From contig NC_090395.1 of assembly GCF_036365525.1 (NCBI RefSeq), positions 65,373,326 through 65,437,325 on the forward strand: 64,000 bases of DNA, read 5' to 3'. The DNA comes from Heterodontus francisci. Taxonomy: Eukaryota. Positions 11,339 to 63,165 of the stretch are shown here, one piece after another. Both the position numbers and the translations under genes were made by a program. The notes beneath the pieces are model-generated. The model worked only from the letters and a program-made list of their open reading frames with translations. It was not told where the DNA came from and made no database searches. Position 1 is the stretch's first letter; each line of letters opens with the position of its first letter.

Positions 11339-11530
11339 TTACTTTTTGAATACAACTGTAGAATACTCTGTTGGTTCTGAAGCAGGAGGCGTGGTAACCG
11401 ATGGCTTGATTTTTTCCTGACTGTTGGAAGGTTTCACATTATCGGAAGTAGCGGAGTCCTCCTGAGCGTGATCGCTGGGCTGAATTGTCACAGTGGCATA
11501 GGTAACTCCTTCTTCCAACTCTCTGGACAG
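11339..11530 (-). CDS. Gene B exon 6, cytoplasmic ITIM and ITSM
   Basis: CTCTTTATCTTCAG|LSRELEEGVTYATVTIQ...ASEPTEYSTVVFKK*; VxYxxV is an ITIM and TxYxxV is an ITSM. Confidence 0.92.
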   Translation of the reverse strand: MSRELEEGVTYATVTIQPSDHAQEDSATSDNVKPSNSQEKIKPSVTTPPASEPTEYSTVVFKK

Positions 11531-14500
11531 CTGAAGATAAAGAGTACGAAGGTGTGATTGATGGGACTGAAGTAATGAGACAATTTATCATTGAAAAACA
11601 AAAATAAAATTTCAGGTAATCTTTAATTTTAGAAAACAAACTCACTTTAAAGCATTATCAGTAAATAGGCAGTGAAATCAGTATTAAATGCAGCCACTTG
11701 AGTTAATCAGTAACTTAGTTTTTGGAAAGAATTTTAACCATTTCAGCACCGCTGTGGTACTCAAGGGATCACCAACAAGTATACCATTGGCAGAGGCTCC
11801 TTCAAAGTTTGATGTATAAAAATGCCTCAGTAGTTGAACCTGGTTGCATGAATTACAAGATCGTGTGTTTTAGCTTCATAGCTGATCTCCAACCAGTAAA
11901 AACCCAGGCCCCAAAATTCCGATTCTTGGATGCTTCTGCAACGGTTGGGGACCAGAAAAATGGGAAGGAACATCACAGCTCAAAGTTTTCCGCATGTGGA
12001 GGGTGGATAAGAGGGTAGGTTTTTCACTACTCCCCCCTGCATTCCCCACCCCCCGCCCCCCGGTCATCTCAATGTCAAGGGGGGAGCGAGCTGACGGGTT
12101 ATCCTGACAATACTGTCCATTATATCCTCAGGAGGACTCAGCAGAAGTTTCACCAGCTGAGAGCTAGTGTGATCCCCACTGAGGCCCTGGGAAAAGGCCC
12201 AAAAACTCTCCCAGCCTAAGGCAATCGATTACTTTAAGTGCCCAGTACCCCCTTATGTTACAGTTTTCAAACTTCTCTTTACAGGCATTGGTGGCCCACC
12301 TTGAAGATACAGCAAACTCCATGCCTGGGATTTGTGATGGGTTCTAAGTCTTTCTCCATGATAGGAACATGGGAACAGGAGTAGGCCATCTATCCCCTTG
12401 AGTCTGATCCACCATTTTTTGTATTCAATTCATGTGATGTGGGCATCACTGCCAATCTAAACCAAAATCTATCATTTATTAACCTGTCCCTAATTGCCCT
12501 TGAGAAGCCTTCTTGAGCTGCTGGAGCCCATTTTTTTTTGCACCAGTTTTGTGCAACTGAATGTCTAGGCCATTTCAGAGAGGAGCTAAGAGACAGCCAC
12601 ATTGAGTTGGGTTTGGAGTCACAAACAGCGGAGACTGGGTAAGACTGGGTAAGAATGGCAGATTTCCTTCCCTAGAGGACATTCTTGAACCAGATGAGTT
12701 TTTACAACATTCAATGTTGTAGTTTCATGGTCCCCATTACTGATACTAGCTTTTTATTCCAAGTTTATTTAATTCACTAAATTTAAGTTCCTCAGCTGCT
12801 GTGGTGGAATTTGAACTCATATTTCTGGATCATTAAATGAGATCTCATGGTGGATCTGTGGCATAACTCCATATACCTTACTTTGCCTGATATCCTGTCA
12901 TGCAGGCCCCCACCTGCCAAGAATGAGGCACATTAATTTCACCAGATGGACATTAAATTTCAAATTGTTCCATATTCCTATGGAAGAAGAGAAGGCCTGT
13001 AACAAGGGGTTGCCAGGCCCCTGGCTGGAAAGACATTTTTGCACATTAACAGACAGTGTTTGGGAACAAAGGAGCTATCCCCTGCTCCAATACAATCCAC
13101 AAACAGACATGGTCAGACCAGTTAGTCACACGACTAACCTGCTTGGCAGTCTTTTTTTTCTGAATTGTACAGTTTTTTAAACTGGGAGTCTGGAGAAAGC
13201 TGTTTTGTTCCTGGTTTGAAAAAACCTCTCCTGGCTGACTCGCCACAGCCTCTCCTGTCTGCTCCCATCTCTTTCTCACGGAACTCCAAAAAACAACTGA
13301 AGACACATGAACCCCAAGAGAGAAACGTCTCCTACAGTGAACAAGTTTAAGAAGAATATTGGGCCCCAATGAAAAGCAAGATCTACCTACAAACAAGGAC
13401 TCTACAGTGAGCTCGAAGAGCGATAACAAAAACTCTTCAGATATTGTCTCAAACCTTTCCACTTTATTTGTCCTCTGCTCTTTCTGTCCCTATTCTGTAT
13501 GTGTGTAAGCGTATGCATGGTAGCATGGGCGCATCGTATATCCATAGGCGTTAACTGAATTAGAGTTTAAGTTTAATAAAATGTCACCTTTCTTCCTTAA
13601 ACCTAAGAAAGCCTGTTTGTGCTAGTTTCTTTGACTTATGTTCAGAGATACAGCACTGAAACAGGCCCTTCGGCCCACCGAGTCTGTGCCGAACATCAAC
13701 CACCCATTTATACTAATCCTGCACTAATCCCATATTCCTATCACATCCCCACCTGTCCCTATATATTTCCCTACCACCTACCTATACTAGGGGCAATTTA
13801 TAATGGCCAATTAACCTATCAACCTGCAAGTCTTTGGCATGTGGGAGGAAACCGGAGCACCCGGAGGAAACCCACGCAGACACAGGGAGAACTTGCAAAC
13901 TCCGCACAGGCAGTACCCAGAATCGAACCCAGGTCCCTGGAGCTGTGAGGTGCTAACCACTGCGCCACTGTGCCGCCCCAATTATAACTTATAATTGGAA
14001 AGTGGTGAACAAGGATTGACCAAGGGTGCGCTAATAACAGTGTGTTTAAAAATAAAACCCTGTTACAGTAAGACTAGGTGAAGGCTGAAAGGGAACCCCT
14101 AGACCTCTTTCTCACCTGGTTGTAACAATCCCTTCATAGCTCTGGTTAACAAAAATCTATCAACCTCAGATTTAACATTAACAATTGATCTAGCATCAAC
14201 TGCCATTTGCAGAGGAGCGTTCCAAGATTCCCCATCTTTTATATGTAGAACAGTTTCCTAACTTAATTTCCATAAGGTTGGCTCCAATTTTTAGGCTATA
14301 TTCACATGTCCTTTACTTCCCAAATAGCGGAAATTGTTTCTCTCTATCTACCTTATCAGTTTCCCTTAATATCTTGAAACACACCATGTTCAGGTCTTGC
14401 TGTGCCTCACTAGTATGGGACGGGGGAAGCGGGTGGGTGGAGGTTGTGTGGGTTGGAAATTGGAATTTGGTCCTACCCATAGTTTTTCTAACCTGTCCCC

Positions 14501-17500
14501 CACATACATTATGAAAAATGGGAGCCAGTCAGAAATAAAAAAACAGGTAGTTAAGAGGTTTAAAGCTACATTTTATAAGGGTAAAAGGCTAGATCTCATT
14601 AGGTTAAAAAAGGGAATTAAATTTAGAAATTGGACAAGGAATGAGAAGACGGGAAAATAGTGAGGACAGAAAGAGCAAATTTAAAGTATTATCTTTCTTG
14701 CTGTTAATTGAAATAATTTTTTCATTTCAGTTAACCTTGACATCTCTGTACAGGAACAATGCAAAAGGGAATACTGACTGGCAGAATTTAAAATAAAACA
14801 GTTTTATACTTTTAATTTAAATTCTGATTCAAGTATTCCCTTTTAGCTGTTCCCCAATCACAAATATCAAGGTTAGATAGAACATAAGTTCTACCCCAAA
14901 AAAGCACATAAAATTATGAAGTTCTCACAGCTGCCTTGAGATTACACTGCAGAATTATAGGTACGAACATTTATTTGAAGCTTCTTTGCTAGCTATTTTC
15001 ATCAGTTAACACCACCACTAAAATGGCAGAGAATGCTACCGATATCGGAACTTGCTCCAAGTGGCATTCACCCACCAGCCCTGTGCTCGCTGACCTACAA
15101 TGGCTTTGGATACGGCAACACCTCAAATTTTAAAATTCTCATTCTTGTTTTCAAATGTGTCCTTGACTTCACCCTTCCCTATCTCTGTAACCTCCTCCAG
15201 TCCTACAACCCTCTGAGTTCTCAGTGCCCCTCAATTCTGGCCTTGTTCATATCCCCGATGTTCATCACTTCACCATTGGTGGCTGCGCCTTCACATATGT
15301 GGCTCAGTGTCAAATTTTATTTGATAACACTCCTGTGAAGCGCCTTGGGACCTTTTACTATGGTGAAGGTCCTACATAAATGCAAGTTGTTGTTGTAGAG
15401 AGAAGAATTTGAGATGAATGCATAAAGTGTGTGTATTTATTATCCCAACACATCACTTCACAGACAGTAGATTCCACAGGCATTAAACCAGCCAGTATTG
15501 TCAAGAGGTTGCAGCCTTACCACAGAGTTTGACTTTGGAATAGAATTTTCTATTGTTGATTCCTTCTCTTTGTAGTCTAAAAAATGCAAACATAAAGGTA
15601 ATTAATAAAGCCATTGAAAGCAGCAGGAGGATTTAACATCTGATTGTTTTTGTGTTGTATTAAATGCCATTTAGGAAAAAAAAAATTGCACTTTTTAATA
15701 TTCTCAATTCAACATTAGGTGAAAAACTGGGATAAGTGAGAGTACTGTGGTAATTTTGTTCAATCATTGGGCTATACTTCATGAGTAGCTGACAACTTGA
15801 GCTATTGGGTAACAGTTAAAACCTTGCATTACAATAATTTATTACATAAGAAAACATTAACATCAAACATGGGTTTATATCAGTTACTTATTGTTAGGTA
15901 AAATGCTTCCAGTTTGTGTCAAGCAGTAATTTTTTTGATATATTCTGATAATATTTCACATTCAATCATCTTTTATTAACTTCAAATTGAACACAATTAA
16001 TTTTATGTTTAGCTATTGGTAAAATTGTTCCTACCTATTTTTGTATGCATTAACTAATTGATCTCCTGTGGCATTTCTCTTGGACAAAAGTGGAAAAGAA
16101 AGGTTTTAGTCCTCCTGTAACTGTGTCTCTGCTTGTCTTCCAAGGATAGGTTTTAAAGGTTTCACTGGTGAAGATTCATTTCCCGTTTATGGGAACTGAC
16201 CAGTTTCTATCTCCATTGGGGTCAATGGAAATGAAAAGTAGACGGTTTCTAACATGGGCAGCAGATCCACAACACTAGTTTTACACCCGGGCGGTGAGTT
16301 GCAAATTTGTTCCTGCTAAACTGTGCATGTGCTGTGGCTGTGCAGCAGCCTGGAAGGTACCGCACAGGCCTTGTTCCATGTTAACGTAGCTGTGCAAAAT
16401 AATTTAAAGGTATTGCACATTGAATAAACTGGCCACGCACAACAACAAAATTTAACAGAGAACATTGTCCCCAGTCTTTAATTCTTTCTATTCCCACTTT
16501 GTCATTCCGTTTGCTTTCTACTCTTTGAGTCTCCTTTTTATACCCTTCAGGTTCTCGTACACTTTCACTTGCTGTTGTCTTCCAATCTCTTTGCCTGTCT
16601 CTGATGCTTTGTTTCATTTTTTTCTCTCTCTTTATGTTAGAAAAAAAGTAGATTTTTTTTTTCACATAAATCTCAAATGCCTTCCTGTGATTCATTCAGA
16701 TTTGGTACAGCAATAAATAAGAGTGTTGCTGCAAAGGTTTTGTCAACAAATATGCTTATATATTTGCAGATGTTACTTTACATCATTTAATACTTGGATA
16801 TTGTCCTTACAGAATTATGCCAGGGAGTTTGTAATTCAACAGAACCATTGGAAAGCTTATATGTTTAATTACATATGTATCCACCCAGAAAACCTGCAAA
16901 AAAATGACTCATGGCATCTAAAAAGCTGACGGACATAAATATATATCTTATGACGCACAAACTTCTCATAACTTAAGCTGCAAGCTTAACTTTTATTGCA
17001 AACCTAACCTATTCCCAGCTCCTTCCAGGCACACGTCAATGCTGACTTATGGTAATGCTGCCATGGAATGTAAAACAGTTGTACTCTTCTCACAATCACC
17101 TCACATGTTCACCTTCATATTGGTAGCCAAAAAACAGGGGAGGGAGGGCAATAGGGAGGGTAATTTTTATGCTCTCCCTGCAGTGGGTTTGGAGGTAGGG
17201 AGAGCACAAAGTTGGATGGGATTGTGGCAGGGGTGTTCCTGCCACTATCCCGCTTCTGCCAAAATTTAGTCTGGGGCGGGAAGGCCTGTGAATGGCCTTC
17301 CTGCCTGCCGCCAATTGAGGCCCTTAACTGGGCAATAAACACCCGCCCCAAGGGCCTCTTCCCACCACAGCCACAATTAGCCGTGTGGCGAGTGGCCATG
17401 ACACCACATGGGAAGCATGCGCGACAAACCATGTGGGTTGCTTCCTGGCTCTGTTGGAGTGAGGGTTCCCTCGTTAAAAGGACTTTGTGCCTGAATGATG

Positions 17501-20500
17501 GACCCGGCATTGGGAAGGGGTGGGGGGGGGGGGTGGTGGGCCTGATGAGGGCCCCCCCCCCCCGCCCTTGCTGCCCACCCTCCTCCCCTGGGATTCCCAC
17601 CTCGCGAGACACCTCCCACTCTGACCTACCGGAGGTCTGGTTCACGTGACATTCCTCGGCCTCTGGTAGGTGCAGCTACCGCAGCAGTCACTGTTTCCAC
17701 CGTGGCTGATGCTGCAGCTACTGCCCTCTGATTGGCTGGCAGCTCTGCAAGGACGGGACTTCTGGCGATGGGGTCCTTGATCCTGTGGAAGGCCCACCGC
17801 TGTCCACTTAAAGTGCCTGTTTGGCACTTAATTCGACAGGCCTTCCGGAGAAGAGGTGACATGAGGATCTCGGTGTTGGTTACTCGGGACCCCCGCCGCC
17901 AGGATAAAATTCCTGTCAGAGAGTCAAGTGTGGTCTGATCTATCACTTATCTGTAAGGGGTTACCCTGTTCCCTCATTTATGCCTCTCCCCCTGTCGCCC
18001 TGGCAAAAGCTGTCAATGGATTAAGATACCTTTTTCTTTGAGCCAATGGTTGTAAGAATATTTGACTTACTATGCTGTGACATCCCTTTAATTGACTGCA
18101 TCCCTTTGAATTCCACTCCACACCCATTCAAATCTTCACCTGGAGCTGTGAATGGTTAAGCACAAAGGCGGAGCCACAGAAATTGAGTGCCATCAACAGA
18201 TTATCATTCTGGTGAAATTTGTACTGGTGAACCAATGTATATTAATTATATGGAAATTGGCTCTATTAACTGGTCACTCGTTTAATTTGCAGTTTGCATG
18301 GCCTTGCTGTGTACCCCCTGTCCTATTTAAGAACAATGACGATAGTTCATAAGTAATTCATGGAGTGTGAAATATCTCAGGATGTCCTGAGGACGCTGTA
18401 TAAAATGAAACTCTTTTCATTGTCTAGATGCTTTTAGAGTTGAGGATTATTTGCCTGATTTAATTATTCTACAACTGAATCTAACTGTTAATAGTATAAC
18501 AAATATGAAATTACTAGTGATTCCACATGAGATTATCTAATTAGATGATAGTTTTATTTACAAAGGAATCATTTAGTATTTGATAGCTCATTCATCTTGC
18601 TCTTGATATTTGTTTGAGTAATTATAATTGTTTCACTTCATCATTCGGTACCAAACTGAAACAGTCTCTTGATTTGCAGCACTGAAATGATAGAGAAAAT
18701 ACAGACAAGTGGTCCTTTTAATTAAGAAATAAAATCACCTTTGTGTTGCTAACATGGCTCCCGAGCATTTTAAAATCGTCAGAAAGAAACAATACACATT
18801 GCTATGTGCCATATACAAATTGCTACAATGTTACTGGCAATCCTGTCACCATTATATTATGCTGAATGGACAGAGCAACAGAGTTCCTATTCTTCGAAAC
18901 AGATAAAGCAAGTACCGTCACTTTTGGCTGACTGCTTTGCTGAGATTGGTGCTAGGTTGAAATAAAAATATGAGGAGATTTCTATCCTGACAAGATGTAT
19001 GTACTGCTGAAATGCAGGTGCAGGTAGCACCTCAACCATAAATCAAGACATGGTCCATTAAAAGTTGTTCCACGTCACGCGGCTGGTTTTTGTTTAGTTT
19101 CTTTGAAAGATGGATTTACTTTGTTGCATGAAGATTAGTTTCATTTCTGAACTTACCATTACCTTTGTGCTTTCTTATTTTTTTGATAACTAGGATCACG
19201 AGTCCAAGAAGCATCACCGTCAAAACTCCAAAGATTAGTCCGAGTGTTAGGAAAAGTCTTGGTGGTTTATGAAAAAGAGAGAGAAATTATATGAATACAG
19301 GGATAGGCATAATCAGGCACATATGGGCCATGCATGGTAATGCAACATTTTCAATATCTGCCATATCTCCCAGATGATATTACAGGGCAATGGAGTGGAT
19401 TATTATCCAATGTCACTGAATTAATGGACCAACTATGATAGTTTAATAACAGATGAAAGGTGATCAAACTGAAACGTTAACTCTGTTTTTTTCTCCACAG
19501 ATGCTGCCTGACTTGCTGAGTGTTTCCAGCGTTTCCTGTTTTTATTGTAGAATATTTTAATCCTTAAAATTATTACAAGCTGTGATGCTGAAACAAATAC
19601 TCTCATTACAGATAATGCTAAAATTAACCTTGTTACTATAACATTAACCCTACATAACCAAAGTAGTGTCTTGAATACAGATTTCTTTTGCTCCACCATT
19701 AGCTGACATACCTTCAGCTGTCTAGGTCCTAAGTTCTGGAATTTCTTTCCTAAACCTGACCACGTCTTTACCACATCTCTCCTTTAAGTCGCTCTGTAAA
19801 ACGTAGCTCTTTCGCTAAGCTTTTGGTCACTTCTCTTATCTCTTTATGCGGCTCAGTGTCCAATTTTGTCTGATGATACTCGTGTGAAGTGCCTTGTGAT
19901 GTTTTACTACATTAAAGGTGTTATATAAATGCAAGTTGTTGTAATGGATGTTAAATTATAAAAAAAGAATTTACTATTGCTTGTCCTGTTGTCCCTTCCC
20001 CAAACCTCCACCCGACCCCAACAAGTCTTTCTCCTCTTTCTCTTTGTCTCCTATTTTTAACATTCTAATTCTGCACCTTTATTTCTAATCCCTTATGGAT
20101 TAAAATTCTAGCAGGGCTGTCCCAAACTCCCCGCAAAACCTTGGTAGATGATCAGAGGATGCCCTGGAGAAACAGCGCAAACCTCTTTTAAAAAATGAAT
20201 TGTTTAAAAAAAAAATTGACCTACCTTTCTGAGCCTCTTGGTCCCATCATTCAGTACACAGAAAACGGAACCACACCAGCATGCAAATGGCTTTACTAAA
20301 ACTTGGAAAATGCCGTGTGGCAAATACCACACAACATGCTTTTCTAATACTGTCACAAAACAAAGAGAAGGGCTAAACTTCCCAAAGTTCTCCACGACTG
20401 ATAGTTTGCCTTGCATCATGTCTGGGTCTGCTGTAGACTAATTGATAGAGATTGATTGCTATTATTAGTTATTGTACTGTGGGATTGCCAGGATAGTAGA

Positions 20501-23500
20501 AGCCAAACAAGGTGGATCTTGGTCTTTTTTTGTTTAGCAATTCCTATGTTCCTAAACTCAGGCTACATTATATCACTTGCAGGCAATGAAAACGGCGTGT
20601 GTATTGACTGCAAAGTCTTCAACCACTTAACACTGATATTCCTCCAATACTTAGACCAGAAGTATCAAGAAAGCCCCTATATTGACTTACTTCTGTAGGC
20701 ATAAAACAATTAAACATTTTAAGTCATATGACTTAGTCACTTAACCATTGTGTAAACAGAACATCCATGAACCCCAGTCTAACATACTTTAAGTTACTCT
20801 CGAGCCATGCAGTGGATAGGGCTCGTTGCATGAATATCGAATCACACTGAAACCCAGGGAAAGCACTTCAATCAACGTATATCTGTTAAATCACAAAATT
20901 GTCTTCCCATTGCAAACTGTTATGATGTTAAATCGAGTTACAGTGAAGATTATAAGTGCTTTTGGTCAAAGATATTTCAGTTTTCAGATGTGGTTGACAT
21001 GTAAAATACTGAATTAATGATATGTTATGAAAGCTACATTTCCCTAAAGCTCATAATTATACATGTCGCAAAAAAAACCTAACAATTACACTTTTATAAA
21101 GCGTATTCGTGTCATTTTAAGTTATTTTTCTGGTTTATTTTTAAATTCTCATCCTTTTCAAATCACTCCATCTCCTTGCCCCTCCCTATCTTTGTAAACT
21201 CCTGCAACTCCTCAACCCTCCGAGATATCTGCGCACCTCCAATTCTGGCCTCTTGAGCATCCCCAATTTAAATCTCTCCACCAGTGGCAGCCGTGCCTTC
21301 AGCTGCCAAGGCGCTAAGCTTTGGAATTCCCTCCCTATACCTCTCTGCCTCTCTTTTAAGATGCTCATTGAAACATACTGCTTTTACCAAGCTTTTGGTC
21401 ATCTGCCCTAATATCTCCTTATGTGACTTGATGTCAAATTCTGCTTGATAAAGCTCCTATGAAGTGCCTTGGGATATTTTACTATGTTAAAATGCTAATC
21501 AACGATAAGTTATTGTTGTACTGGCAAGAGTTTGAGAAACCCATAATAGGTAAAATCACACAGCTGATAACTCCTATCTCTTGAGTTTCTGCTAGTTATG
21601 GGGATAATTCTTTGTTCATCCGGAGCAAATAGGAATATTGGATTAGTGCTACCCACCATTTTCTGACCAATTATTTCAATTTCCAATGCATGCCGTGTTC
21701 TCACTAGCACTACAGACTTGTAATGTACTGCCTTAGAGTTAGAATTAGTTACGTGAAGGCCATAAACACATGAATTGTGTCTCACTGACTTGATCTGTGC
21801 TGAGAAACTGAAATAACTCAAAGACTATCGCAAATTTCACATCCTAGTTATCTTTGTCATCCCGCTATATATGAGCTAAAATAATTCCACTAAATTTGCT
21901 TGGCACATACATAATTACGCTGAATCTTACGTATTCACTGAGGCATTATTACTGGATGCAAACTGATACAATTGTACAGGACTGTGAGGTTGTATGTTAA
22001 AAAGGTGCCTTTTCATTGATGGCAGCTGTGTTTGAATCAAACTCAAACTGATGGAAAGAAGATCTCCTCTCCTTGTCTACTCTAAAGGTTTGGATTTGAG
22101 TAGTCTTATCTCAGTCCACAATGGACAAAGGTCAATGGCACAATGCCACCCATAATTCAGCACCTGTTGACAATTCATTGGCAGTTAGGCCACAAGAGTT
22201 GTTGGAGGCAAATGAAAACTGGTGGAGTAGGAGGTTGTCTTCTGGGTCCAAGAGGGGGAATTTCCTCAGCGCTGTTGATTCATCAACAATCTTATTCACA
22301 CGTGAAAACGGGGGTTTTCTGCTCAGCCTCTCCCAAGGTTACACCGGTAGAATGTGGGAAGCACCCAGGAAATTCACCCCCATTGTTTCAAGCACAATGT
22401 TAGGTTGGTGCTGGAGCTGAGAATTACATTCATTCTAAAGTACCGACATTCCCCATTTGGCAGAAACAGTTACCTGAACTTTGCCAGAGAAGTAAATGCA
22501 CAATCTCTCATATGGCAGTCGGACATTTCACATTATTGTACTTGTGCAGAAATAAAACAAATGCTCAGAGTACATCAGTTCAAAAACATTTGACATTTAC
22601 CTTAATCTTTCCTTGTCCTTAGGAAATAGGTTTTGATCTGTTAAAAATGATGTATCAAAATATTATTTGATTATTTACTAGCCTTGTGTGAAAGATTCAC
22701 TCTCAACTACCAAGATCCATTTGCAGTGATTACTGATAGAAGACTGAAATTCTGATTAGATAGATCAAAATGCAACAGGTGGTTTTTCAATATTATCCTG
22801 GCTCACTCTTAACAGAATTATAATTTTAAATCTTGGAGATTTTACAAAATATATAATAGAGCTTGCATCAAATTATATAAACTTGTGATTGTGTAAAAAT
22901 ATATCATTGAAAAATATACACACTAATAAACATACATTTGTGTCCTACCTTTAGTAACTTTGAGTTCTGTGGGACTTAATTCATCCAGAAGGTGAGGTAT
23001 TTCTATTCCACACCAGTACCACCCCTTATCGTTTGTTGTTAATCGCTCCATATGTACTGTAAGTATTCCTTTTACATTATCAGCTTTAATTTTTATTCTG
23101 TCATCATGGCTTTTCCTCTCAGCGCCTTGGGTTTGCACTAAAACAGTACAGCTTCTTCGGTAGTAACCTCTGCACCAGTACTTCTGATAACTTTTATAAT
23201 ATGTGTCAAATTTGCATGTGATATCAACTGATTTTCCCTCTGTTGCAGATTTTACTTTTGGTCCACTTATTGCAGCGTGCGTAACTGTAAATTTGAAAAT
23301 ATTTTAAAGTACAATTGTTGAACACTTCAGAGAAACATAAAAAAATTAAAATTGATGCTCCCTTGTAACTGACTCTATAACTGTTCCACTCATTTTTTTT
23401 CTGTGACCTCCTGTCTCTTTGTTTGCCTTTCATTTGCTCTGTCTGGCTGCCTCATTGTCCTTTCTGTAGCTCTCTGTCTGTTTTTTATTTACTGACTCTC

Positions 23501-26500
23501 CTCTTGCTTCGGTATTTCCCACTGTGTCTACATGGTTGTTACCAATTTACTGAGTTTTGTTTCCTTTACATTGTTGAGGACAAAGGCACACAGCCAGAAA
23601 CAAAAGTGCACTGAGTTGGCGAAGTGGATTTGGGTCAGGCAGAAGAGGTGAGATAAGGGTGGAGAGAGGCTTTCTGTAAGGTTCCAAAATACATAGGGAT
23701 TTCAGAGAAACTGGGAGATAAGTGATGAGTTGAGCTGGTATGTATCGAGGTAGAATTTATCCAAAATCAGACCCTTGTACCCTAAACTGATTGAAGTTGT
23801 ATTGGGCCGAGACTTGTGAAAGTCCCTGGTACTGGTTCAAAAAAGAACTGGTGCAACACACATGAGCGAATCTGAAACAGGAGATGCAAACTTGGGTATG
23901 ATAAGAATGATAGACTAGATAATAGAGCAGGGAAACTTACATTTTAAGAACAGAGCAAGGCGTGGGTAAAGTGACGACAGAGTACAGCTTGAACTGACAC
24001 CTAAAGGTGGAAGGCTCATGAGAGTGGATTATATAAGATTGCATAGGATATACGGCAGAGAAACAGGCCATTCAGTCCATCCGGTCTATGCTGCCATTTA
24101 TGCTCCCCTCGACCCCACTCTCATCTTTCCTCATCTAAATCTAGCGGCTCGACCCTCTATTCCCTTCTCCCTCATATGCCATACTATTCACGTCAACCAT
24201 TCCCTGTGGTAGTGAGTTCCACATTTGCACCACTCTATGGGTGAAGAATTTTTTCTAAATTACCTATTGGACTTCTTGGTGACTATTTTATATTGATGGC
24301 CTCTGGTTTTGCTCATGCCCACAAGTGGAAACTTTCTGTATCCACTCTATGAAAACCTTTCATAATTTTAAAGACCTCTATCAGGTTATCCCACAGCCTT
24401 CTCTTTTCAATAGAAAAGAGACCCAGCCTGTCAATCCTTTCCTGAGATGTATACCCATACATAATTCCCTTCTGAAAACCACGATTGAATCTGCCTCCAC
24501 CACACTCTCAGGCAGTGCATTCCAGATCTTACCTACTTGCTGTGTAAAAAATCTTTTCCTCTTGTCGCCTTTAGATCTTTGTTAATCTCTTTAAATCAAT
24601 GTCCTCTGGTTCTTAACCCTTCTGCCAATGGGGACAGCTTCCCCCTATCTACTCTGTCCAGACCCCTCATCATTTTGAACACGTCTATCAAATCTCTTCT
24701 TAATCTTCTCTTCTTTAAGGAGAACAACCCCAGCTTTTCCAACTTATCCACATAACTGAAGTTCCTCATCCATGGAATCATTCTCATTCTGAACCCTCTC
24801 TTATGCCTGCACATCTGTCCTAAAGTGTGGTGCCCAGAACTGGGCACAGTACTCCAGTTGAGGCTGAACCAGTGTTTTATAATGGTTCAGCATAACTTCC
24901 TTGTTTTTTCACTCTAGCCTCTATTTGTAAAGCCCAGGATCCCATATGCTTCTTCACCACTTTCTCAATTTGCCCTGACACCTTCAATAATTTGTGCACA
25001 TATACCCCCAGGTCTCTCTGCTCCTGCACCCCATTTAGAATTGTATCTTTTATTTTATATTGCCTTTCCTTGCTCTTCCTACCAAAATGTATAACTTCAC
25101 ACTTCTCTGCATTAAATTTCATCTGCCACGTGTCCGCCCATCCCACCAGCCTGTCTGTGTCTCTTGAAATCTAACTATCCTCCTCGCAGTTCACAATACT
25201 TTAAGTACTACAAAGATTGAAATTGTGCCCTACACACTCAAGTCTAGGACACTAATGTAGATCAAGAAAAGCAGTGATCCTGGGAAACCCCACTATGTAC
25301 CTTCCCCCAGTCCAAAAAACAACCTTTCATCACTACTAGGACCCGCATGGGTCCTAGTTATGCCTGTCTTTTTGTGGGGTATGTCAAGCATTCTTTGTTC
25401 CAGTCCTACTCAGGCCCCCTCCCCCAACTCTTTTTCCGGTACATCGATGACTGTATCGGTGCCGTTTCCTGCTCCCGCCCCGAACTGGAAAACTTTATCA
25501 ACTTTGCTTCCAGTTTCCACCCTTCTCTCACCTTTACATGGTCCACCTCTGACACTTCCCTTCCCTTCCTCGACTTCTCTGTCTCCATCTCTGGGGATAG
25601 GTTGTCTACTAATATCCATTATAAGCCCACCGAGTCCCACAGCTACCTCGACTACACTTCTTCACACCCTACCTCCTGTAAGGACTCCATTCCATTCTCC
25701 CAGTTTCTCCGTCTCCGACGCATCTGCTCTGATGATGCTACCTTCCATGACGGTGCTTCTGATATGACCTCCTTTTTCCTCAACCGAGGACTTCCCCCCA
25801 CTGTGGTTGACAGGGCCCTCAACCGTGTCCGACCCATTCCCCGCACCTCTACCCTCACCCCTTCCCCTCCCTCCCAGAACCGTGACAGGGTTCCCCTTGT
25901 CCTCACTTTTCACCCCACCAGCCTCCACATCCAAAGGATCATCCTCCGCCATTTCCGCCACCTCCAGCGTGATGCCACTACCAGTCGCATCTTCCCCTCC
26001 CTTCCCCTGTCAGCATTCCGAAGGGATCGTTCCCTCGGCGACACCCTGGTCCACTCCTCCATTACCCCCACCACCTCGTCCCTGTCCCATGGCACCTTCC
26101 CCTGCAATCGCAGGAGGTGTAATACCTGCCCATTTACCTCCTCTCTCCTCACTATCCCAGGCCCCAAATACTCCTTTCAGGTGAAGCAGCGATTTACTTG
26201 TAGTTCTTTCAATGTAGTATACTGTATTCGCTGCTCACAATGTGGTCTCCTCTACATTGGGGAGACCAAGCGCAGACTGGGTGACCGCTTTGCGGAACAT
26301 CTCCGCTCAGTCCGTAAGCAGGACCCTGAGCTTCCGGTTGCTTGCCATTTCAACACTCCCCCCTGCTCTCATGCTCACATCTCTGTCCTGGGATTGCTGC
26401 AGTGTTCCAGTGAACATCAACGCAAGCTCGAGGAACAGCATCTCATTTACCGATTAGGCACACCACAGCCTGCCGGACTGAACATTGAGTTCAATAATTT

Positions 26501-29500: not shown

Positions 29501-30986
29501 CTGCCAAACCCACCCGCTTCCGTTCAGGGCTCTTTGTACAATCTATTCACAATCAAACATACTGACCAGTCTGTCTCACTAATCGCTGCTTTATAAAATT
29601 CGGAGTATTTATGTTAATTAGGAGATGACAGTATTGCAATGAGTAGCATAATTTTTCCAAAAAATATTAGATAGCATTTGAAACATTTCAAAGATATTTA
29701 GATTTGCATCTGATTATTTAAGGAAACAGTAATTATTTTAAAAAAATAATGAGTTCTGACTTTAAAATTCAATGTGTCCGAGAAGTTGTTCTCTACTCGG
29801 AGGTAAGGTAGCCGTTAGGAGCTGATTCACTGGATTTTTACAATCATTTAAAAGAACCCACATGAAATAGGCATGAAGAAGATTGAAAAGGAGCTGAAAT
29901 GGAGTTCTCTGTTTGCTAATGGCACTGAATATTTCCCAATGGTACAAAATATAAACACATTTGGCTTTTTGTCAATAATGAAAATATTTCATTACTTAAC
30001 AACAGTCAGTTAAATAAATCAATCAGAACTACAGGTAAAAATCAGAATCTTGCAACTGTTGTGACCAATTAGTTGCAAGATTCTGCCTTATTAACATGTA
30101 AGAGGTTAAAATTCCCTTCTAGTCAATATGTGTATAAAACTGGTGACATGCTTGAATCAGCAAAGGCAGGGATTTCTCCCAATGTCCGATTTTGTCGCCC
30201 CATTGCACAGGCAATGAGTGGGAGATTAAAAACACACCATGTTTTACAGCGATTAAAAAATAATGCAAGATGTTTAACAAAAATGTTTACTTGCAGTTTC
30301 TGCTTTGGTATTTGCAGAAATTACAGGAAATGCAGTATTTGAAAGACTTCAAATGATATTTACCATATAATGTCATGATTTCACTTATTATTCTCCTGCA
30401 CTTTGCATTTACATTGATGTCAAACAAAACTGTGCATTATGTTCGAACTCAAAATTATTGGATGTTTCTCAACTGATTTGTGAACTCAAATTTTAACTGA
30501 TCAATTGAACAAGTCAATACATATAAAGAGGCTCAATGAGCACATATTACACTGTGCGAAATGTAAAGCCCTGTTATTACAAATTCAGCGTGAACAGAAA
30601 AATAATTTGTCTAATCAGACAATTCACCTCATCCAGGTTTGAATTTCTAGCTTCACACCAATCAAGACTAAAGAAAATGGACGTTAAAGCAGGTGGTCTG
30701 ATTGCTTGAGTTTGTTAAAATGAGGTTCTGTTGTATTATTTTTGATGTAAAATAGGGGACATATATTTATCTTTTTCTCTAAAGACAATCATTACTGATC
30801 TTGATAAAGAATCATAGTATGAAAAGCAGAAGATATTCCTTAGTCCAATATCATGAGATTTTCAACAGACCACATTTCCAGTCAGACTGACACAACTACA
30901 TGTTTCTATTACTTCCAAAAACTCCAATAAGACCAATATTCCTTACCTGATAGGAAAGCAATGGACAGGAGAAGGATAAAACCCAT
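11339..30986 (-). CDS. Gene B: CD300/pIgR-like (CMRF35-like) single-IgV receptor, inhibitory type (ITIM+ITSM), 253 aa, 6 coding exons
   Basis: Exons 30986-30947, 23284-22949, 22637-22601, 19257-19157, 15576-15521, 11530-11339. All GT-AG, phases 1,1,2,1,0, 762-nt open frame. Leader, IgV, stalk, uncharged TM and a cytoplasmic tail with VTYATV and TEYSTV. Confidence 0.92.
12896..14127 (+). mobile_element. Solo LTR (ERV or Gypsy type) with a nested SINE
   Basis: TGTCA...TAACA ends, 4-bp TSD ATCC (12892-12895 and 14128-14131), AATAAA at ~13575; interrupts a CR1 3' fragment. Confidence 0.8.
13642..13980 (-). mobile_element. V-SINE nested in the solo LTR
   Basis: Same family as 3249-3560, full length. 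Confidence 0.85.
15066..15395 (+). mobile_element. L2-like LINE 3' end
   Basis: FKILILVFK peptide and GTGAAGCGCCTTGGGA...TAAATGCAAGTTGTTG tail; similar copies at 19690-19942 and 21140-21500. Confidence 0.75.
15521..15576 (-). CDS. Gene B exon 5, cytoplasmic (DYKEKESTIENSIPKSNSV)
   Basis: 56 nt, TTTGCATTTTTTAG|...GTG|GTAAGG; phase 1 to 0 bridges the TM exon and the last exon exactly. Confidence 0.82.
17157..17918. mobile_element. GC-rich Harbinger-like MITE
   Basis: GGGTAATTTTTAT / ATAAAATTCC ends; CCAATTGAGGCCCTTAA and CCTCTGATTGG shared with 33409-34129. Confidence 0.65.
19157..19257 (-). CDS. Gene B exon 4, transmembrane (LFLTLGLIFGVLTVMLLGLVILVI-KKIRKHKGN)
   Basis: 101 nt, pyrimidine tract then CCAAG|, G|GTAAGT donor; 24 uncharged residues followed by a basic stop-transfer cluster. 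Confidence 0.92.
19445..19547 (+). repeat. Penelope terminal-repeat fragment (degenerate hammerhead region)
   Basis: GATGAAAGG...GAAACGTTAACTCTG...CCACAGATGCTGCC matches 26861-26955; similar pieces at ~4718-4815 and at 39352-39417/43686-43745. Confidence 0.75.
22601..22637 (-). CDS. Gene B exon 3, stalk (DQNLFPKDKERLR)
   Basis: 37 nt, TTTTTAACAG|...TTAAG|GTAAAT, phase 1 to 2. Confidence 0.88.
22949..23284 (-). CDS. Gene B exon 2, IgV domain
   Basis: 336 nt, TTTACAG|TT...AAA G|GTAGG; VTHAAISGPKVKSATEGKSVDITCKFDTYYKSYQKYWCRGYYRRSC...DKGWYWCGIEIPHLLDELSPTELKVTK; 57 of 112 residues identical to the gene A V domain by manual alignment. Confidence 0.95.
25338..26955 (+). mobile_element. 5'-truncated Penelope-like retroelement inserted in an older CR1
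   Basis: ORF 25347..26510 has RT C-terminus (MG..., RYIDD) and GIY-YIG (VVYCIRC...LYIGET...RFAEH); TSD CATCACTACT at 25328-25337 and 26960-26969. Confidence 0.93.
26857..26896 (+). ncRNA. Minimal type I hammerhead ribozyme-like motif in the Penelope terminal repeat
   Basis: AGTT-CCGATGA-AGGGTCACTGACCC-GAAA-CGTT-AACT; stem II GGGTC/GACCC; the core has CCGATGA instead of CTGATGA. Confidence 0.6.
28706..29075 (-). mobile_element. LINE 3' fragment, same family as 10180-10730
   Basis: ORF 28757..29143 ending FKKAAHHHLLKGN. Confidence 0.75.
30947..30986 (-). CDS. Gene B exon 1, signal peptide (MGFILLLSIAFLS)
   Basis: ACAATGG start context, hydrophobic leader, TCA G|GTAAGG phase-1 donor. Confidence 0.88.
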
Positions 30987-31069
30987 TGTTTTAATGTTTT
31001 ACAACTCTACTTTCCACACACAGATCGTAACTTCAGTGGCCCTGCTTCTGCACTGCAATATCTAACCAG

Positions 31070-35250: not shown

Positions 35251-35254
35251 CACA

Positions 35255-47450: not shown

Positions 47451-47823
47451 TTCAAGTTTAAACTCACCCCATTGAGCTTTGGGGCATTTTTAAATATATG
47501 TTCTGTACTAATCATGCTACATTGGTAAAATATTACATATTAATGCACTTAATATTCCGAATCTAGTGTGTCCCACATTTAGAAAATTCATTAAATAAAT
47601 GCTAACTGCATCTACATTTAAGCTTTGAAAGCTGCTTGACTGGGTCAATAAAAAATCTTCCCTAAACATGATCTCAATATAAGATAAAATGCAAGTCTTC
47701 TGGTTGTTATCCTTTCTAAAATATTTATAATGAGTAGGTTATAAAAACTTCATCCAAAGTTTTTGTAGTCAAGCTTAAATGCACAGAAATGATTAAAATC
47801 AACAACTTACCAGTTTTCATCAT

Positions 47824-47923
47824 CTATATTTTCAGTTTGACTAAAAGGGCCCAAACAAGCAGAATGGCAAAGAATGCCCAGCGTAAAATGCTCCATATAA
47901 AATAGTACAGAGAATTATTTTGC
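47824..47923 (-). CDS. Gene A exon 4, transmembrane helix with Arg and very short tail
   Basis: Acceptor TTTTGTCTTCTATCTACCTAG|; encodes QNNSLYYFIWSILRWAFFAILLVWALLVKLKI*; the exon continues 13 nt past TAG to a G|GTAAGT donor (exon end 47811). Confidence 0.88.
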
Positions 47924-50900
47924 CTAGGTAGATAGAAGACAAAATGGTTTAATCAAAATAGTTTTCCATATCCAGAGTTACCTTGGATGTATGAATTATT
48001 TGGTTACACTTGTGATGGAAGGTAACAAGTTTTTCTACTGTCCTGCTCCTGGTGCATGCTGGGAAATGACACACTTTGACCCATGACATTCCATCTATTA
48101 AAATTAGTGGACAGTCAGTATTGAGTTGGAAAGTGCACTGTCTCCCAGTATTAGCTTGTACCAAGAGCATTGAAGTGGCAAATCTCCAGTTTCCTTCTCT
48201 CATTAGATATGATAGCATAATGACAGCATAGTATCACGAAATCAGCTTCTATTGATATCCATGTGCTACAAGAATACTTGCTAACGTTAAAAGTAGAAAC
48301 AGAAATGCTAACGTTAAAAGTAGAAACAGAAAATGTGGAAACAGGCCAGTCAGCAATTACAGACAGAGTAGCTGAGTTGAACATTTCAGGTGTAGACTCT
48401 TCATCAGAACTGAAATGTTACCTTGCCTGTTTTCCCCACAGATGTTGACTGCCCTTTACCATCATTTCCTGATTTTGATTCAGAAATCCAGCATCTACAG
48501 GACTTTTGTTGTCAATAAAATGTATTTTTATGTTTTGATTTAAACATACAATCAATACTGTGAACAAAAGATGTGGGTAGGCTGTTGTTTGCGAGTTTTA
48601 AGTGCAATACTTAATGAAGAAAAAGAAATTGGGGCCAATTTTAATTCTGCAGGCAAGAAATACACAGGATCGGGTGGAACCCAGCTTTTACACCTGGCAA
48701 ATATTAAATTGCGGGTGGGGGATGGTTGGAAAACCAATATTGCACCTGATCCCATCAGTTTCCTGACAGACGCATCAGTTTCCTGACAGACGCATTGGGT
48801 TAAAATTGCTCCGTTAGAAACAGTCTATGACAGGTTAAAATACTTTTTTAGAATATATTCCTTGCACAGTTTGAAACAATGCAGGGCTCTTGGGTGTATC
48901 GGACTTTCATAGACCTCCATCATGTGAAGTAATGAATGAATAATGCTAAATTTCAATCCGTGGGGGTTTAGCGCTTGGAATTTCTACGACTGATCTCGCA
49001 CTTTGGCCATTTGTACCATTTCTCTTGGGTTTTCACCAATTTCCTGCTGAGGTTATGGCGAGAGATGGGGAGAAGCCCCATGAGAATTTGCGCACAGATC
49101 TTTAACTAAAACTAATCAAAGATCTTTTTTTATGTCCTGGTAATTTTTTCAAGTGTAATAAATTGATGACTTTGGTGGCTAAAGGATGGCAAATTACAAT
49201 GTACCATTGGTGCAAGTGAGGATTCAGTTCTGTGTCTGTGGCTTGATTTTAACTATTGGGTGTCCAGGTGTGCGAGACGGCCGACTGATAGTGCTGTCTG
49301 TCCTGACTTTTACTTCTATTGACTTCAACAGGACAAGATCTACAACTGGCTGCCACACACACTTTGCATTATTGCATAAAGGCAAAAATGCCCCCTTTTG
49401 ATTCTGGTATGGGTGTTAAAGATGCATTTCCTTCCACAGGACTGACCTCCCACACTTTGGGCAATTATCCACCTGTACCTTCTCAGAATCTCTCATATTG
49501 CAGTAGGACATTACTCATTATTGTGGTTAGGAACATAGCAAAATAGAAAATTTAAGGCACAGAAAGAGGCCATTCGGCCCATCATGTCTGTGCCCGCCAA
49601 AAGATAATCCAGCCTAATCCCTCTTGGTCATTAGTCCTATAGGTTATGACACTTCAAGTGCATATCCAAGAGTTTTTTTTTTAGAACAATGAGGGTTTCT
49701 GCCTCTACCATCCTTTCAAGTAGTGGGTTCTGGATCCTCTCTGGGTGAAAAAAACTTTTCCTCAACTCCCCTCTAATCCTTTTCACAATTACTTTAAATC
49801 CATGCCCGCTGGTTATTGACCTCTCTTCTAAGGGAAATAGGTCCTTCCTATCCACTATATCTAGGCTCTCAAAATTTTATACATCTCAATTAAATCTCCC
49901 TTCAGACTCCTCTGTTCCAAAGAAAAGAACCCCAGCCTACCCAATCTTTCCTCATAGCTAAACATTCCTGACAATAGCCTCATAAATCTCCAATGTACCC
50001 TGTCTCCAGTATGATCAGAATTGTGCAGAGGCAGATGTCCAGAATGGTCCAGTTTAAGTAGGTATGCCATTTACCTTAGGATTTCCTTGCCCGATGGATC
50101 ACCTGAGATTGAAGGAAGTAACTTGTAACCTGTTAAAAATTACATAAATGATTGATTATATAGATTATACTGTCAAATTGTGGTTCACATCAGTCTTAGC
50201 CATCAGAGATAAATTTATACTGATTTGTGATAAAAAAGATGGAAAATTTCATGGGGATAGAATTAGTACCAAAATGAAACACTTTGTCGTTTTTCACTAT
50301 TCTGCTGGCTTACTCTTAATTGAAAACTTTGGAAATTTTGAAAAATACATAATAAGTCATGCAGCAAATTATGTAAACTCAAAGGCATACAGCTGAAAAA
50401 TATACATGATAATAAAAAAATTCAGATCCTACCTTCATTGACTTTAAGTTCTACAGGACTTAAGATGTCCGACAAAAATCTTTCAATTCCACACCAGTAC
50501 AAGCCTTGGTCATTCTTTGTTAATTGATTCATCGTTACTGAAAATTTTCCTGCTTCATTATCAGCAGCAATGGTTATTCTGCCATCAGAATTTGTCTTCC
50601 TCGGGCCTTGGGTTCGTACTAGAATAGTACAATCTTCCCAGTTGTCGCCTCTGCACCAGTACTTTTGAAAATTGCTGTAGAATTTGTTGTATGTACATGT
50701 GATATGGACTGATTGTCCCACTGACCCATTTACTATATCCGGTCCATCTAGTGCAGCGCATGTAACTGTTCAGTGTGAAATTAAAACACATGTTTTAATG
50801 TACAATAAAAGTAAATAAATGCAACAGTTTAATAGCATAGAGTGTATTTTGAATGTTTAAACTTTAAATATGTGCATTGAGACTCGTAAACTTACTCTGC

Positions 50901-62900: not shown

Positions 62901-63165
62901 GTGCGTTGGATTTCCTATAGGAAAATTGGGTAGGGAAGATTATACCCTCTCCAGCAACGGATACCATCTGGTTTTCTGTACATTTAAATTAACTCTTAAT
63001 GTTAACAAATTTTAATTGGACAACAATTCTAGAAGAGAGTTCTGCTAATAATACTTATTTCTATAAATCTCACACTAACGCACACAATTGTCATGCACCC
63101 ATAGAAGTTCATAGCAATTGTTTCTTACCTGAGGAGATCATGAAAAGATGAAATGCAAAATCCAT
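47824..63165 (-). CDS. Gene A: CD300/pIgR-like (CMRF35-like) single-IgV receptor, activating type, 174 aa, 4 coding exons
   Basis: Exons 63165-63129 (leader), 50765-50433 (IgV), 50129-50075 (stalk), 47923-47824 (TM+stop). All junctions are GT-AG with phases 1,1,2, giving a 525-nt open frame. Protein: MDFAFHLFMISSVTCAALDGPDIVNGSVGQSVHITC...QKYWCRGDNWEDC...DQGLYWCGIERFLSDILSPVELKVNEGYKLLPSISGDPSGKEILRQNNSLYYFIWSILRWAFFAILLVWALLVKLKI*. Confidence 0.88.
48345..48412 (-). ncRNA. Penelope-derived hammerhead-like motif in gene A intron 3, sense orientation
   Basis: Minus strand CAGTT-CTGATGA-AGAGTCTACACCT-GAAA-TGTTC-AACT. Confidence 0.5.
49545..50000 (-). mobile_element. CR1 3' fragment
   Basis: LGFFSLEQRSLKGDLIEMYKI. 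Confidence 0.8.
50075..50129 (-). CDS. Gene A exon 3, stalk (GYKLLPSISGDPSGKEILR)
   Basis: 55 nt, TTTTTAACAG| ... CCTAAG|GTAAAT, phase 1 to 2; similar to gene B exon 3 including its splice sites. Confidence 0.88.
50433..50765 (-). CDS. Gene A exon 2, IgV domain
   Basis: 333 nt, AACAG|TT...GAA G|GTAGG. Has B-strand Cys (ITC), KYWCRG with a second Cys pair (CX7C) and DxGxYWC, the CD300/pIgR/TREM signature. Overlaps ORF 50422..50721. Confidence 0.95.
51012..51717. mobile_element. GC-rich Harbinger-like MITE
   Basis: GGGCAAGATGTT / AAAATTCAGCCC ends, ATG on both flanks. Confidence 0.65.
51735..52178 (+). mobile_element. CR1 3' fragment
   Basis: Nucleotide similarity to the other CR1 3' ends in the window. 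Confidence 0.75.
52342..53138. repeat. CpG-rich unclassified element with short inverted ends
   Basis: CTGACAACACAAA ... TTTGAGTTGTCAG; internal pyrimidine-rich then purine-rich halves; no TSD found. Confidence 0.55.
53300..53775 (+). mobile_element. CR1 3' fragment
   Basis: WNALPERVVEADSRVTFKRELD. Confidence 0.8.
54397..55187. mobile_element. GC-rich non-autonomous DNA transposon, Harbinger-like
   Basis: Ends GGACTGGATTTT / AAAATCCCAGCC, with TAT on both flanks. Confidence 0.7.
55398..55767. mobile_element. hAT-type MITE, 370 bp
   Basis: Perfect 12-bp TIR TAAAGGCCTGCT/AGCAGGCCTTTA, perfect 8-bp TSD CCTGGTTA, subterminal CCCGA repeats. Confidence 0.92.
56260..57470 (-). mobile_element. RTE-clade LINE fragment
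   Basis: GVKQGCVIAPILFSLFL and ELQHTDDA (YADD site) in ORF 56932..57207. Confidence 0.8.
57480..58480 (-). mobile_element. Vingi/Ingi-like LINE relic
   Basis: Minus-strand translation gives PQGAVLVPSLFHIYTSD, KFIYDDD and WGANAHT...STIEYCTSFW. Confidence 0.6.
58488..60772 (-). mobile_element. Decayed CR1, interrupted by the MITE at ~59590-60361
   Basis: ORFs 58946..59284 and 60496..60693 give CR1 RT peptides. Confidence 0.85.
59590..60361. mobile_element. GC-rich Harbinger-like MITE inserted in CR1
   Basis: GCTGAATTTTA / TAAAATTCAATGC ends; GAAGGGGTTGAGGGTTAGA shared with the truncated copy at 32429-32970. Confidence 0.65.
60785..61222 (-). mobile_element. Deu-type SINE
   Basis: Reverse complement of the same family. 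Confidence 0.75.
61340..61985 (+). mobile_element. CR1 3' fragment
   Basis: FSLEKRRLRVDLIEILKIMKG. Confidence 0.8.
62455..62848 (-). mobile_element. Deu-type SINE, degenerate
   Basis: Reverse complement of the same family. Confidence 0.7.
63129..63165 (-). CDS. Gene A exon 1, signal peptide (MDFAFHLFMISS)
   Basis: ATG...TCA G|GTAAGA phase-1 donor. Shares the TCAG|GTAAG end and similar 5' context with the gene B and C leaders, and joins the IgV exon in frame. It lies 12.4 kb from the V exon, so the linkage is inferred. Confidence 0.78.

Follow-up and report, generated by a model that had tools for sequence, protein, structure and literature searches.

A tandem pair of CD300-like receptor genes with activating-type and inhibitory-type features in the horn shark

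As a rule, pairs of activating and inhibitory receptors are of recent origin, variable and confined to single species. The 64,000-nucleotide stretch of DNA analysed here (the window, below, means this whole stretch) was initially annotated, from its letters, as carrying such a pair of CD300/pIgR-like genes in a probable cartilaginous fish, and the animal is indeed a shark, the horn shark Heterodontus francisci. This raises the questions of whether the genes are intact, to which known receptors they are related, how old they are, and in what sense they form a pair. Our preferred reading, which we consider very probable, is that the locus encodes two intact tandem type I receptors with one CD300-type IgV domain each, derived from an old duplication, of which A would activate and B would dampen.

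Gene structures and transcripts

The window contains two complete single-V receptor genes arranged head to tail, Gene A (63165-47824) and Gene B (30986-11339), together with a third leader exon and transposons, and nothing else. All mapped features lie on the minus strand, as follows.

Gene A
63129..63165, minus strand: exon 1, start codon and leader (MDFAFHLFMISS), with a phase-1 donor GTAAGA; equals residues 1-12 of RefSeq P0157
50433..50765, minus strand: exon 2, IgV, 333 nt, phase 1 in and out; Pfam V-set, 100% identical to P0157
50075..50129, minus strand: exon 3, stalk, 55 nt, phase 1 to 2, from a splice-site and homology scan; P0157 residues about 124-142
47824..47923, minus strand: exon 4, transmembrane (TM) helix with Arg, KLKI tail and stop codon; TM residues conserved in orthologues

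Gene B
30947..30986, minus strand: exon 1, start codon and leader (MGFILLLSIAFLS); 92% identical to the Heptranchias orthologue leader
22949..23284, minus strand: exon 2, IgV, 336 nt; Pfam V-set, covered by contigs of runs X1-X4 with zero mismatches
22601..22637, minus strand: exon 3, stalk, 37 nt, predicted; both junctions found in contigs of four runs
19157..19257, minus strand: exon 4, uncharged TM and juxtamembrane KKIRKHKGN; contig pieces span exactly 19157-19257 in 4/4 runs, frame checked
18071..18145, minus strand: candidate cassette exon, 75 nt, phase 1 to 1, containing GCGVEFKGMQSIKG; canonical AG and GTAAGT sites
15521..15576, minus strand: exon 5, cytoplasmic (YKEKESTIENSIPKSNSV); 80-85% identical to orthologues, splice sites and frame checked
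11339..11530, minus strand: last exon, ITIM VTYATV, ITSM TEYSTV and stop codon; 89% identical to the Heptranchias orthologue

Gene C
3788..3836, minus strand: leader exon, MKNIEFTIMLIAVSLS, from a motif scan; can be aligned with the leaders of A and B, the remainder of the gene lying beyond the window start

The leader, V and stalk exons of A and B had been described as homologous and of the same phases, and alignments and splice-site checks agree with this. These exons are flanked by canonical AG/GT sites in both genes, their phases are identical (leader 1, V 1, stalk 2 into the TM exon), and the leaders can be aligned along with an upstream AAAACATTAAA box. Exons were used as search queries singly and not as joined spliced protein models. 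The V exons (50765..50433 in A, 23284..22949 in B) matched the Pfam V-set with E values of 4.7e-18 and 2.8e-15, respectively, and are 70% identical to each other as DNA and 52% identical as protein (60/115, E 4e-43), close to the 51% first estimated. Both V domains carry KYWCRG, a second cysteine 8 residues further on, and D-x-G-x-YWC; the cysteine positions predict a second (C-C') disulfide in each.

The two genes differ in their membrane and cytoplasmic ends, in the manner initially proposed. The TM exon of Gene A encodes YYFIWSILRWAFFAILLVWALLV-KLKI-stop, that is, an arginine inside the TM segment and a tail of 4 residues. Gene A is identical over its full length to the 174-aa RefSeq protein "CMRF35-like molecule 7 [Heterodontus francisci]" (P0157). 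For lack of a cytoplasmic tail it might be taken for a decoy or degenerating copy that does not signal, with an incidental arginine. Against this, its frame is intact and equals the RefSeq model, elasmobranchs of at least 8 species have a 1:1 orthologue, and no other part of the protein is as conserved as the TM segment in the orthologue alignment, where the arginine and 9 other TM residues are invariant among 7 orthologues from sharks and rays, as is the surrounding W-x-x-L-R-W. The W-x-x-L-R-W start of the TM segment is also common to family members in skate, electric ray and sturgeon, and we regard the decoy explanation as highly improbable. The arginine is followed by 14 hydrophobic residues, a count equal to that after the TM lysine of the bat CD300 protein 'CLM-5'.

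Gene B combines an uncharged TM segment with an ITIM and an ITSM in its last exon. Its CDS is open over 762 nt and encodes 253 aa, and the orthologues of Carcharodon, Heptranchias, Rhincodon and Pristis are equally long. In the alignment, the ITIM is retained in all B orthologues and the C-terminal motif is retained as either an ITSM or an ITIM. The candidate cassette exon matches a 24-aa insert of the ray 'isoform X1' proteins P0166 and P0185 (E 1e-4).

Reads were placed on Gene B only, from runs X1-X4, whose source type was guessed and which we presume to be RNA because spliced joints argue for RNA. Contigs of all four runs contain the junctions joining 22949 to 22637 and 22601 to 19257, across GT..AG introns and with no mismatch. 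Gene B, and of the two genes only Gene B, was thus seen to be transcribed and spliced, over its V-stalk-TM part and at the joints that had been predicted.

The presence of two complete tandem genes on one strand is therefore confirmed by sequence and by orthologues, and for B also by transcript contigs. Pseudogene and chance-ORF readings of A and B are ruled out by intact frames, conservation and spliced contigs. The suggestion that these genes were hidden did not hold up, as Gene A was already a RefSeq model and orthologues of A and B are annotated 'CMRF35-like' in many elasmobranchs; those of Gene B in other sharks and rays are named "CMRF35-like molecule 1". The genes are real and very old, and automatic annotation already lists the gene family. 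To our knowledge, none of the elasmobranch orthologues carrying these automatic names has been characterised. The horn shark Gene B protein was absent among the database relatives of the catshark B orthologue and of Gene A; in the protein database it may lack annotation or have been merged with a neighbouring gene. At present, the finding is mainly a confirmation and refinement of automatic annotation.

Relatives and age of the pair

The initial assignment of both V domains to the CD300/pIgR group, based on their motifs, is borne out by the V-set matches, by KYWCRG and D-x-G-x-YWC, and by the structural comparisons. The best single-domain PDB match of V-A was human CD300f (2nms, 78.5 bits, compared with 48.9 bits for pIgR D1). 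For V-A and V-B alike the best single-domain matches were CD300f/CLM-1 and CD300a, with pIgR D1, NKp44 and TREM below them, and Foldseek with a Gene A model also placed CD300f on top. Human pIgR reached the highest summed score (four stretches with V-A, two with V-B), because several of its domains match. pIgR has the same V-domain type but 2-5 tandem V-type domains and a long sorting/transcytosis tail, whereas A and B have one V exon each and end in KLKI or in the ITIM/ITSM tail.

The mammalian CD300 family (CMRF35-like, CLM/LMIR/IREM) resembles A and B in having one IgV domain with the extra C-C' disulfide, KYWC and D-x-G-x-YWC, and in comprising members that either are tail-less with a basic TM residue at equal depth or bear an ITIM, CD300f/CLM-1 being inhibitory. 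The tail of turtle CLM-1 resembles the motif order of the B clade, namely an ITIM, Y-x-N-V (in most species), a terminal T-E-Y-x-x-V and then KK, although the likeness between the B tail and the turtle CLM-1 tail is not statistically significant. B orthologues also show a weak Pfam 'SIT' match, the same as is carried by CD300f-type clusters. There are differences as well: the TM residue is Arg in Gene A but Lys or Glu in CD300, A and B have each been kept 1:1 across sharks and rays whereas mammalian CD300 genes evolve fast, and the chromosomal region may not be the same.

In our trees, A and B form one elasmobranch clade (support 98/99) outside the tetrapod CD300 clade, the CD300 domains of mammals, turtle and caecilian grouping elsewhere. 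The nearest outgroups are gene C and the multi-V 'pIgR-like' proteins of skates and rays. Within the A+B clade, the B sequences of sharks and rays are united at 100/100, and monophyly of A was not rejected (p-AU 0.35). Judged by these trees, A and B appear as family-level relatives of CD300 and not as orthologues of any named CD300 gene. Sharks and rays alike have orthologues of A and of B, and the pair is therefore ancient and has not been recently homogenised. The two genes would have arisen by an old tandem duplication that predates the shark-ray divergence, each persisting since then as a single orthologue.

That the family might not be new had been allowed for from the start. Skate MDIR (modular domain immune-type receptors; Cannon et al. 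2006, Immunogenetics 58:362, cited in PMC3031540) are described in PMC3031540 as a cartilaginous-fish multigene family with CD300/TREM/pIgR-like domains in activating and inhibitory forms. A and B fit this description, a comparison made by description only; unlike skate MDIR, each has only one V domain, and together they make up a separate clade with good support. With CD300 and skate MDIR already known, A and B therefore represent no new kind of receptor. PMC3031540 was the only match in our search of the literature on CD300, CMRF35 or MDIR in sharks.

Signalling and the ligand

Under our preferred reading of an activating and a dampening receptor, Gene A would most likely signal through a dimeric, ITAM-bearing adaptor (DAP12, FcR-gamma or CD3-zeta type), its arginine pairing with the adaptor's aspartate, and this pairing would activate the cell. 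Since the arginine could fit several such adaptors, none can be named. The tail of Gene B, once tyrosine-phosphorylated, would most likely recruit SH2 phosphatases of the SHP-1, SHP-2 or SHIP type and dampen activation. Both receptors would be expressed by, and signal in, leukocytes; adaptor, phosphatases, ligand and cell type are the parts of this scheme that we infer.

The layout of the locus and its signalling polarity support the paired system that was initially proposed. A stricter sense of pairing would have A and B bind a common ligand, such as a membrane phospholipid, and set the threshold for activation of a cell that carries both. Mammalian CD300 proteins bind membrane phospholipid. 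Consistent with a common ligand, the genes are neighbours in the same orientation, with homology in their leader, V and stalk exons; the two clades resemble each other in the FG-loop region CGIE...D.LSP.EL and in the stretch preceding KYWC; and in Heptranchias and Stegostoma, at least, the A and B orthologues share a chromosome (matching contig sizes). However, ligand-sharing pairs (KIR, Ly49, PIR, CD300a/c) are usually far more similar than the V domains of A and B, and the C-C' loop enclosed by the predicted disulfide is consistently acidic in A but basic/aromatic (YYRR) in B. Given that V identity is only 52% and that both lineages arose before sharks and rays split, the pairing does not imply that A and B share a ligand, and we think it rather unlikely that they do.

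In sharks and rays alike, A and B have each been conserved as one copy, with hardly any change in the membrane helix of the activating partner. This conservation points to a conserved, probably endogenous ligand and to a fixed adaptor partner. The pair also offers a clean system for dating CD300-type signalling.

TMIGD3 and the third leader

TMIGD3 is a little-studied Ig gene interleaved with ADORA3 on human 1p13, whereas the human CD300 cluster lies on 17q25 (RAB37, NAT9, GPRC5C region). It is conceivable, but in our view doubtful, that the B lineage, or A and B together, is the elasmobranch counterpart of tetrapod TMIGD3 and not of the 17q25 CD300 cluster or PIGR. Among the matches of B orthologues are mammalian TMIGD3/ADORA3 read-through proteins (E about 1e-13), and one B orthologue is named 'TMIGD3-like' in UniRef. 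V-B and wombat TMIGD3 are 39% identical (86.7 bits), with a single V domain and KYWCRGYYRxxC in both. The best matches of TMIGD3 are B-clade domains, within a sequence set that is biased because it was chosen by likeness to V-A, and a tree constrained to unite B with TMIGD3 was slightly better than the free tree (p-AU 0.54). Against such a counterpart, TMIGD3 sits on a very long branch and the support for A+B+TMIGD3 is only 45/0; V-B matches skate and mammalian pIgR-like/CD300 domains equally well, and therefore the relation is not reciprocal; and no significant similarity between TMIGD3 and Gene B was detected beyond the V domain, that is, in the TM segment or tail.

A broader proposal, more speculative and in our estimation improbable, is that A and B constitute a single-copy activating/inhibitory CD300-like module, kept 1:1 since before the shark-ray split, in which the inhibitory lineage, B, would be the ancestor or counterpart of tetrapod TMIGD3 (in a 1p13-type region). 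TMIGD3 would then be a relic of an ancient paired receptor, and the membrane exon with the arginine-containing W-x-x-L-R-W, which ray and sturgeon relatives also have, would be the sign of a partnership with an adaptor that goes back to before cartilaginous and bony fishes diverged. If the link to TMIGD3 were true, it would provide an origin for a poorly understood human gene.

A third leader exon had also been noted. It exists at 3836..3788, outside the range given at that time; it was not detected by blastn and was recovered by a motif and splice scan. The leader is 82% identical over 17 residues to the N-terminus of a Heptranchias 'pIgR-like' protein (P0020) and also matches the N-terminus of catshark P0021, both of which are multi-V 'pIgR-like' proteins. 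By these matches, the exon appears to begin a multi-V "pIgR-like" gene C that follows A and B. The same order, B then C, is found in catshark, where the two genes have adjacent locus tags; read-through models from Stegostoma and Scyliorhinus show it as well.

Structure of genes A and B and splicing of gene B

We delimited the exons of gene A, the tail-less single-IgV receptor gene with a transmembrane arginine, by mapping database-matched shark proteins onto the window and by scanning for splice sites. All AG/GT sites of its four exons are canonical, with phases 1, 1 and 2, and the last exon encodes ...YYFIWSILRWAFFAILLVWALLV, then KLKI and the stop codon. In a protein search, the V exon was 100% identical to P0157, a RefSeq protein of 174 aa named "CMRF35-like molecule 7 [Heterodontus francisci]", and the full sequence of this protein corresponds exactly to the four exons as delimited beforehand. 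Downstream on the same strand lies gene B, the ITIM/ITSM-tailed receptor gene, with six constitutive exons. Its coding sequence sums to 762 nt (253 codons and a stop), and every junction codon keeps the frame; the transmembrane segment is uncharged, and the last exon carries VTYATV and TEYSTV, which fit the ITIM and ITSM consensus, respectively.

Features of genes A and B
63165..63129, minus strand, gene A leader exon
50765..50433, minus strand, gene A V exon
50620-50650, minus strand, gene A loop enclosed by the extra disulfide
50129..50075, minus strand, gene A stalk exon
47923..47824, minus strand, gene A transmembrane exon and stop
30986..30947, minus strand, gene B leader exon
23284..22949, minus strand, gene B V exon
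23140-23170, minus strand, gene B loop enclosed by the extra disulfide
22637..22601, minus strand, gene B stalk exon
19257..19157, minus strand, gene B transmembrane exon
18145..18071, minus strand, gene B candidate cassette exon
15576..15521, minus strand, gene B cytoplasmic exon
11530..11339, minus strand, gene B last exon

Splicing of gene B was checked by comparing contigs of four small sequencing runs, all from one sample, with window positions 19000-23400. The complete V exon was present in all four, and the contigs matched the gene B exons of this interval with zero mismatches. Each of two joints, 22949|22637 and 22601|19257, bridges an intron that has GT..AG boundaries on the minus strand. 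The runs are presumed to be RNA, for which these spliced joints argue. The transmembrane-exon piece stopped at 19157 in every run, which settles the choice between two possible donors for this exon. One contig record extends 30 letters past the transmembrane exon, and others run on upstream of the V exon for 94-189 letters; these extra letters have no match within 19000-23400. No horn-shark gene B protein appeared among the protein-database relatives of gene A or of the catshark B orthologue; the gene may lack an annotation or be merged with a neighbour, as happens in the zebra shark and catshark models P0013 and P0156.

The candidate cassette exon (75 nt, with AG and GTAAGT sites) keeps the frame and matches a 24-residue insert of the "isoform X1" sawfish and manta orthologues (E 1e-4). 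It may be an alternative cytoplasmic segment that rays and a shark have both conserved.

V domains, family assignment and phylogeny

A six-frame scan returned two open segments of Ig V type, 50769..50425 and 23303..22926, both on the minus strand and both matching Pfam V-set (E 4.7e-18 for V-A, the gene A domain, and 2.8e-15 for V-B). KYWCRG, a second cysteine eight residues on, and D-x-G-x-YWC are present in both. The initial annotation described the genes as paired activating and inhibitory receptors, and this holds for layout and signalling polarity; the V domains, however, are only 52% identical (115 residues, E 4e-43; 70% at the DNA level). All A orthologues have an acidic C-C' loop (DNWED, DDQED and similar) within the extra disulfide, whereas in all B orthologues this loop is basic/aromatic (YYRRS). 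Given this ectodomain identity and the opposite loop character, we think that A and B would more likely bind distinct or merely overlapping ligands than a single shared one.

Against solved structures, pIgR gave the highest total scores, since it matches through several domains. Among single domains, CD300f/CLM-1 matched best (78.5 bits for V-A, 72 for V-B), followed by CD300a, whereas pIgR D1, NKp44, TLT-1 and TREM-1 scored lower. The AlphaFold model of gene A has a mean pLDDT of 68 (about 80 in the V domain), and Foldseek placed human and mouse CD300f first and pIgR D1 next. In the ESM Atlas, the neighbours of one B orthologue fell into CMRF35-like and pIgR-like clusters, some bearing the weak "SIT" Pfam match that B orthologues also have.

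Orthologues of gene A (164-175 aa, named CMRF35-like molecule 2, 5 or 7) were found in Heptranchias, Stegostoma, Mustelus, Chiloscyllium, Amblyraja and Narcine (171 aa), together with a 154-aa Cetorhinus isoform. Gene B has orthologues of 252-277 aa in Carcharodon, Heptranchias, Rhincodon, Pristiophorus, Pristis, Rhinoraja, Mobula, Scyliorhinus and Chiloscyllium punctatum; most bear the name "CMRF35-like molecule 1", and one is called "TMIGD3-like". Maximum-likelihood trees built from V domains join A and B in a single clade (98/99). Within it the B sequences are monophyletic and include both sharks and rays (100/100), and monophyly of A is not rejected (p-AU 0.35); the two lineages therefore predate the shark-ray divergence. 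As nearest outgroups the trees give multi-V "pIgR-like" proteins from skates, stingrays and sharks, and the CD300-type domains of mammals, turtle and caecilian form a separate clade.

The B orthologues also retrieve mammalian TMIGD3/ADORA3 read-through proteins. TMIGD3 shares the YYRR loop, V-B is 39% identical to wombat TMIGD3 with KYWCRGYYRxxC in common, and within our own sequence set the best matches of TMIGD3 are B-clade domains. Constraining B and TMIGD3 together slightly improved the likelihood (p-AU 0.54), but TMIGD3 is a long branch whose grouping has support of 45/0, the relation is non-reciprocal, and the two do not align outside the V domain. We regard a relationship between the elasmobranch B lineage and TMIGD3 as a lead of fairly low probability.

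The receptor family is already known from the CD300 family and from the skate MDIRs described in PMC3031540. RefSeq already lists gene A and the orthologues of both genes, with automatically assigned names, and a literature search found no paper on them. What is new here is the verified horn-shark gene B structure, the candidate cassette exon, the 1:1 elasmobranch conservation of both partners, and the transmembrane geometry.

Proposed signalling

The transmembrane segment is the most conserved part of gene A, with Y148, W152, L155, R156, W157, F159, A161, I162, L163 and W166 invariant in 7 species. About nine hydrophobic residues precede the arginine and exactly fourteen follow it, the same geometry as that of the transmembrane lysine of bat CD300 "CLM-5". 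Mammalian activating CD300 members differ in the residue itself, but its depth is the same, and this correspondence speaks against a specifically FcR-gamma-type reading. Tail-less immune receptors with a basic transmembrane residue are known to pair with Asp-bearing ITAM adaptor dimers, and the gene A arginine would likely do so as well. The W-x-x-L-R-W start of the segment is shared with multi-V "pIgR-like" proteins from a sturgeon (P0043), the little skate (P0057) and the electric ray Narcine (P0187), which suggests that this exon type is old.

The ITIM of gene B is present in every orthologue. In most sharks the C-terminal motif is an ITSM (T-E-Y); ITIM-like or variant forms replace it elsewhere, with I-E-Y in the rays and in C. 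punctatum, and M-E-Y found in Pristiophorus. By the standard inference, such a tail would recruit phosphatases with SH2 domains. Most B orthologues (P0161-P0185) have a middle motif, Y-(D/N)-N-V, which is a Grb2-type site; the horn shark (last exon, 11339-11530, minus strand) and Heptranchias have lost this tyrosine, with serine in its place.

Gene C and the remainder of the window

A third leader exon had also been noted and does exist, but at a position beyond the range assigned to the cluster.

Leader exon of gene C
3836..3788, minus strand, aligns with the gene A and B leaders, common donor included

Two multi-V "pIgR-like" proteins match its sequence at their N-termini: Heptranchias P0020 (82% over 17 residues) and catshark P0021. 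In the catshark, the locus tags of the B orthologue and P0021 are consecutive, and two RefSeq "pIgR-like" proteins, P0013 (zebra shark, Stegostoma) and P0156 (catshark, Scyliorhinus), read through the B orthologue's stop region into the leader and V domains of the next gene; these two are probably fused gene models. The consecutive tags and read-through models indicate that the B-then-C order is conserved.

The window is without N runs, and its remainder is mostly transposon sequence. Intronic stretches at 19441-19587, 19882-20028 and 21205-21498 are matched by contigs of the four runs at 95-99% identity with depths in the thousands, and probably belong to repeat families that are abundant or strongly expressed. 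Intron 1 of gene B contains a 387-aa ORF (25347-26510, plus strand) that resembles a Penelope-type element; its GIY-YIG match (E 7e-4) is weak and falls below the Pfam cut-off. A LINE with a fragmented reading frame occupies 39694-43597 (plus strand) in the interval between genes A and B; a GDSL-type esterase domain (E 1.5e-13) is present in one of its ORFs, and reverse transcriptase (E 3.8e-17) in later ones.
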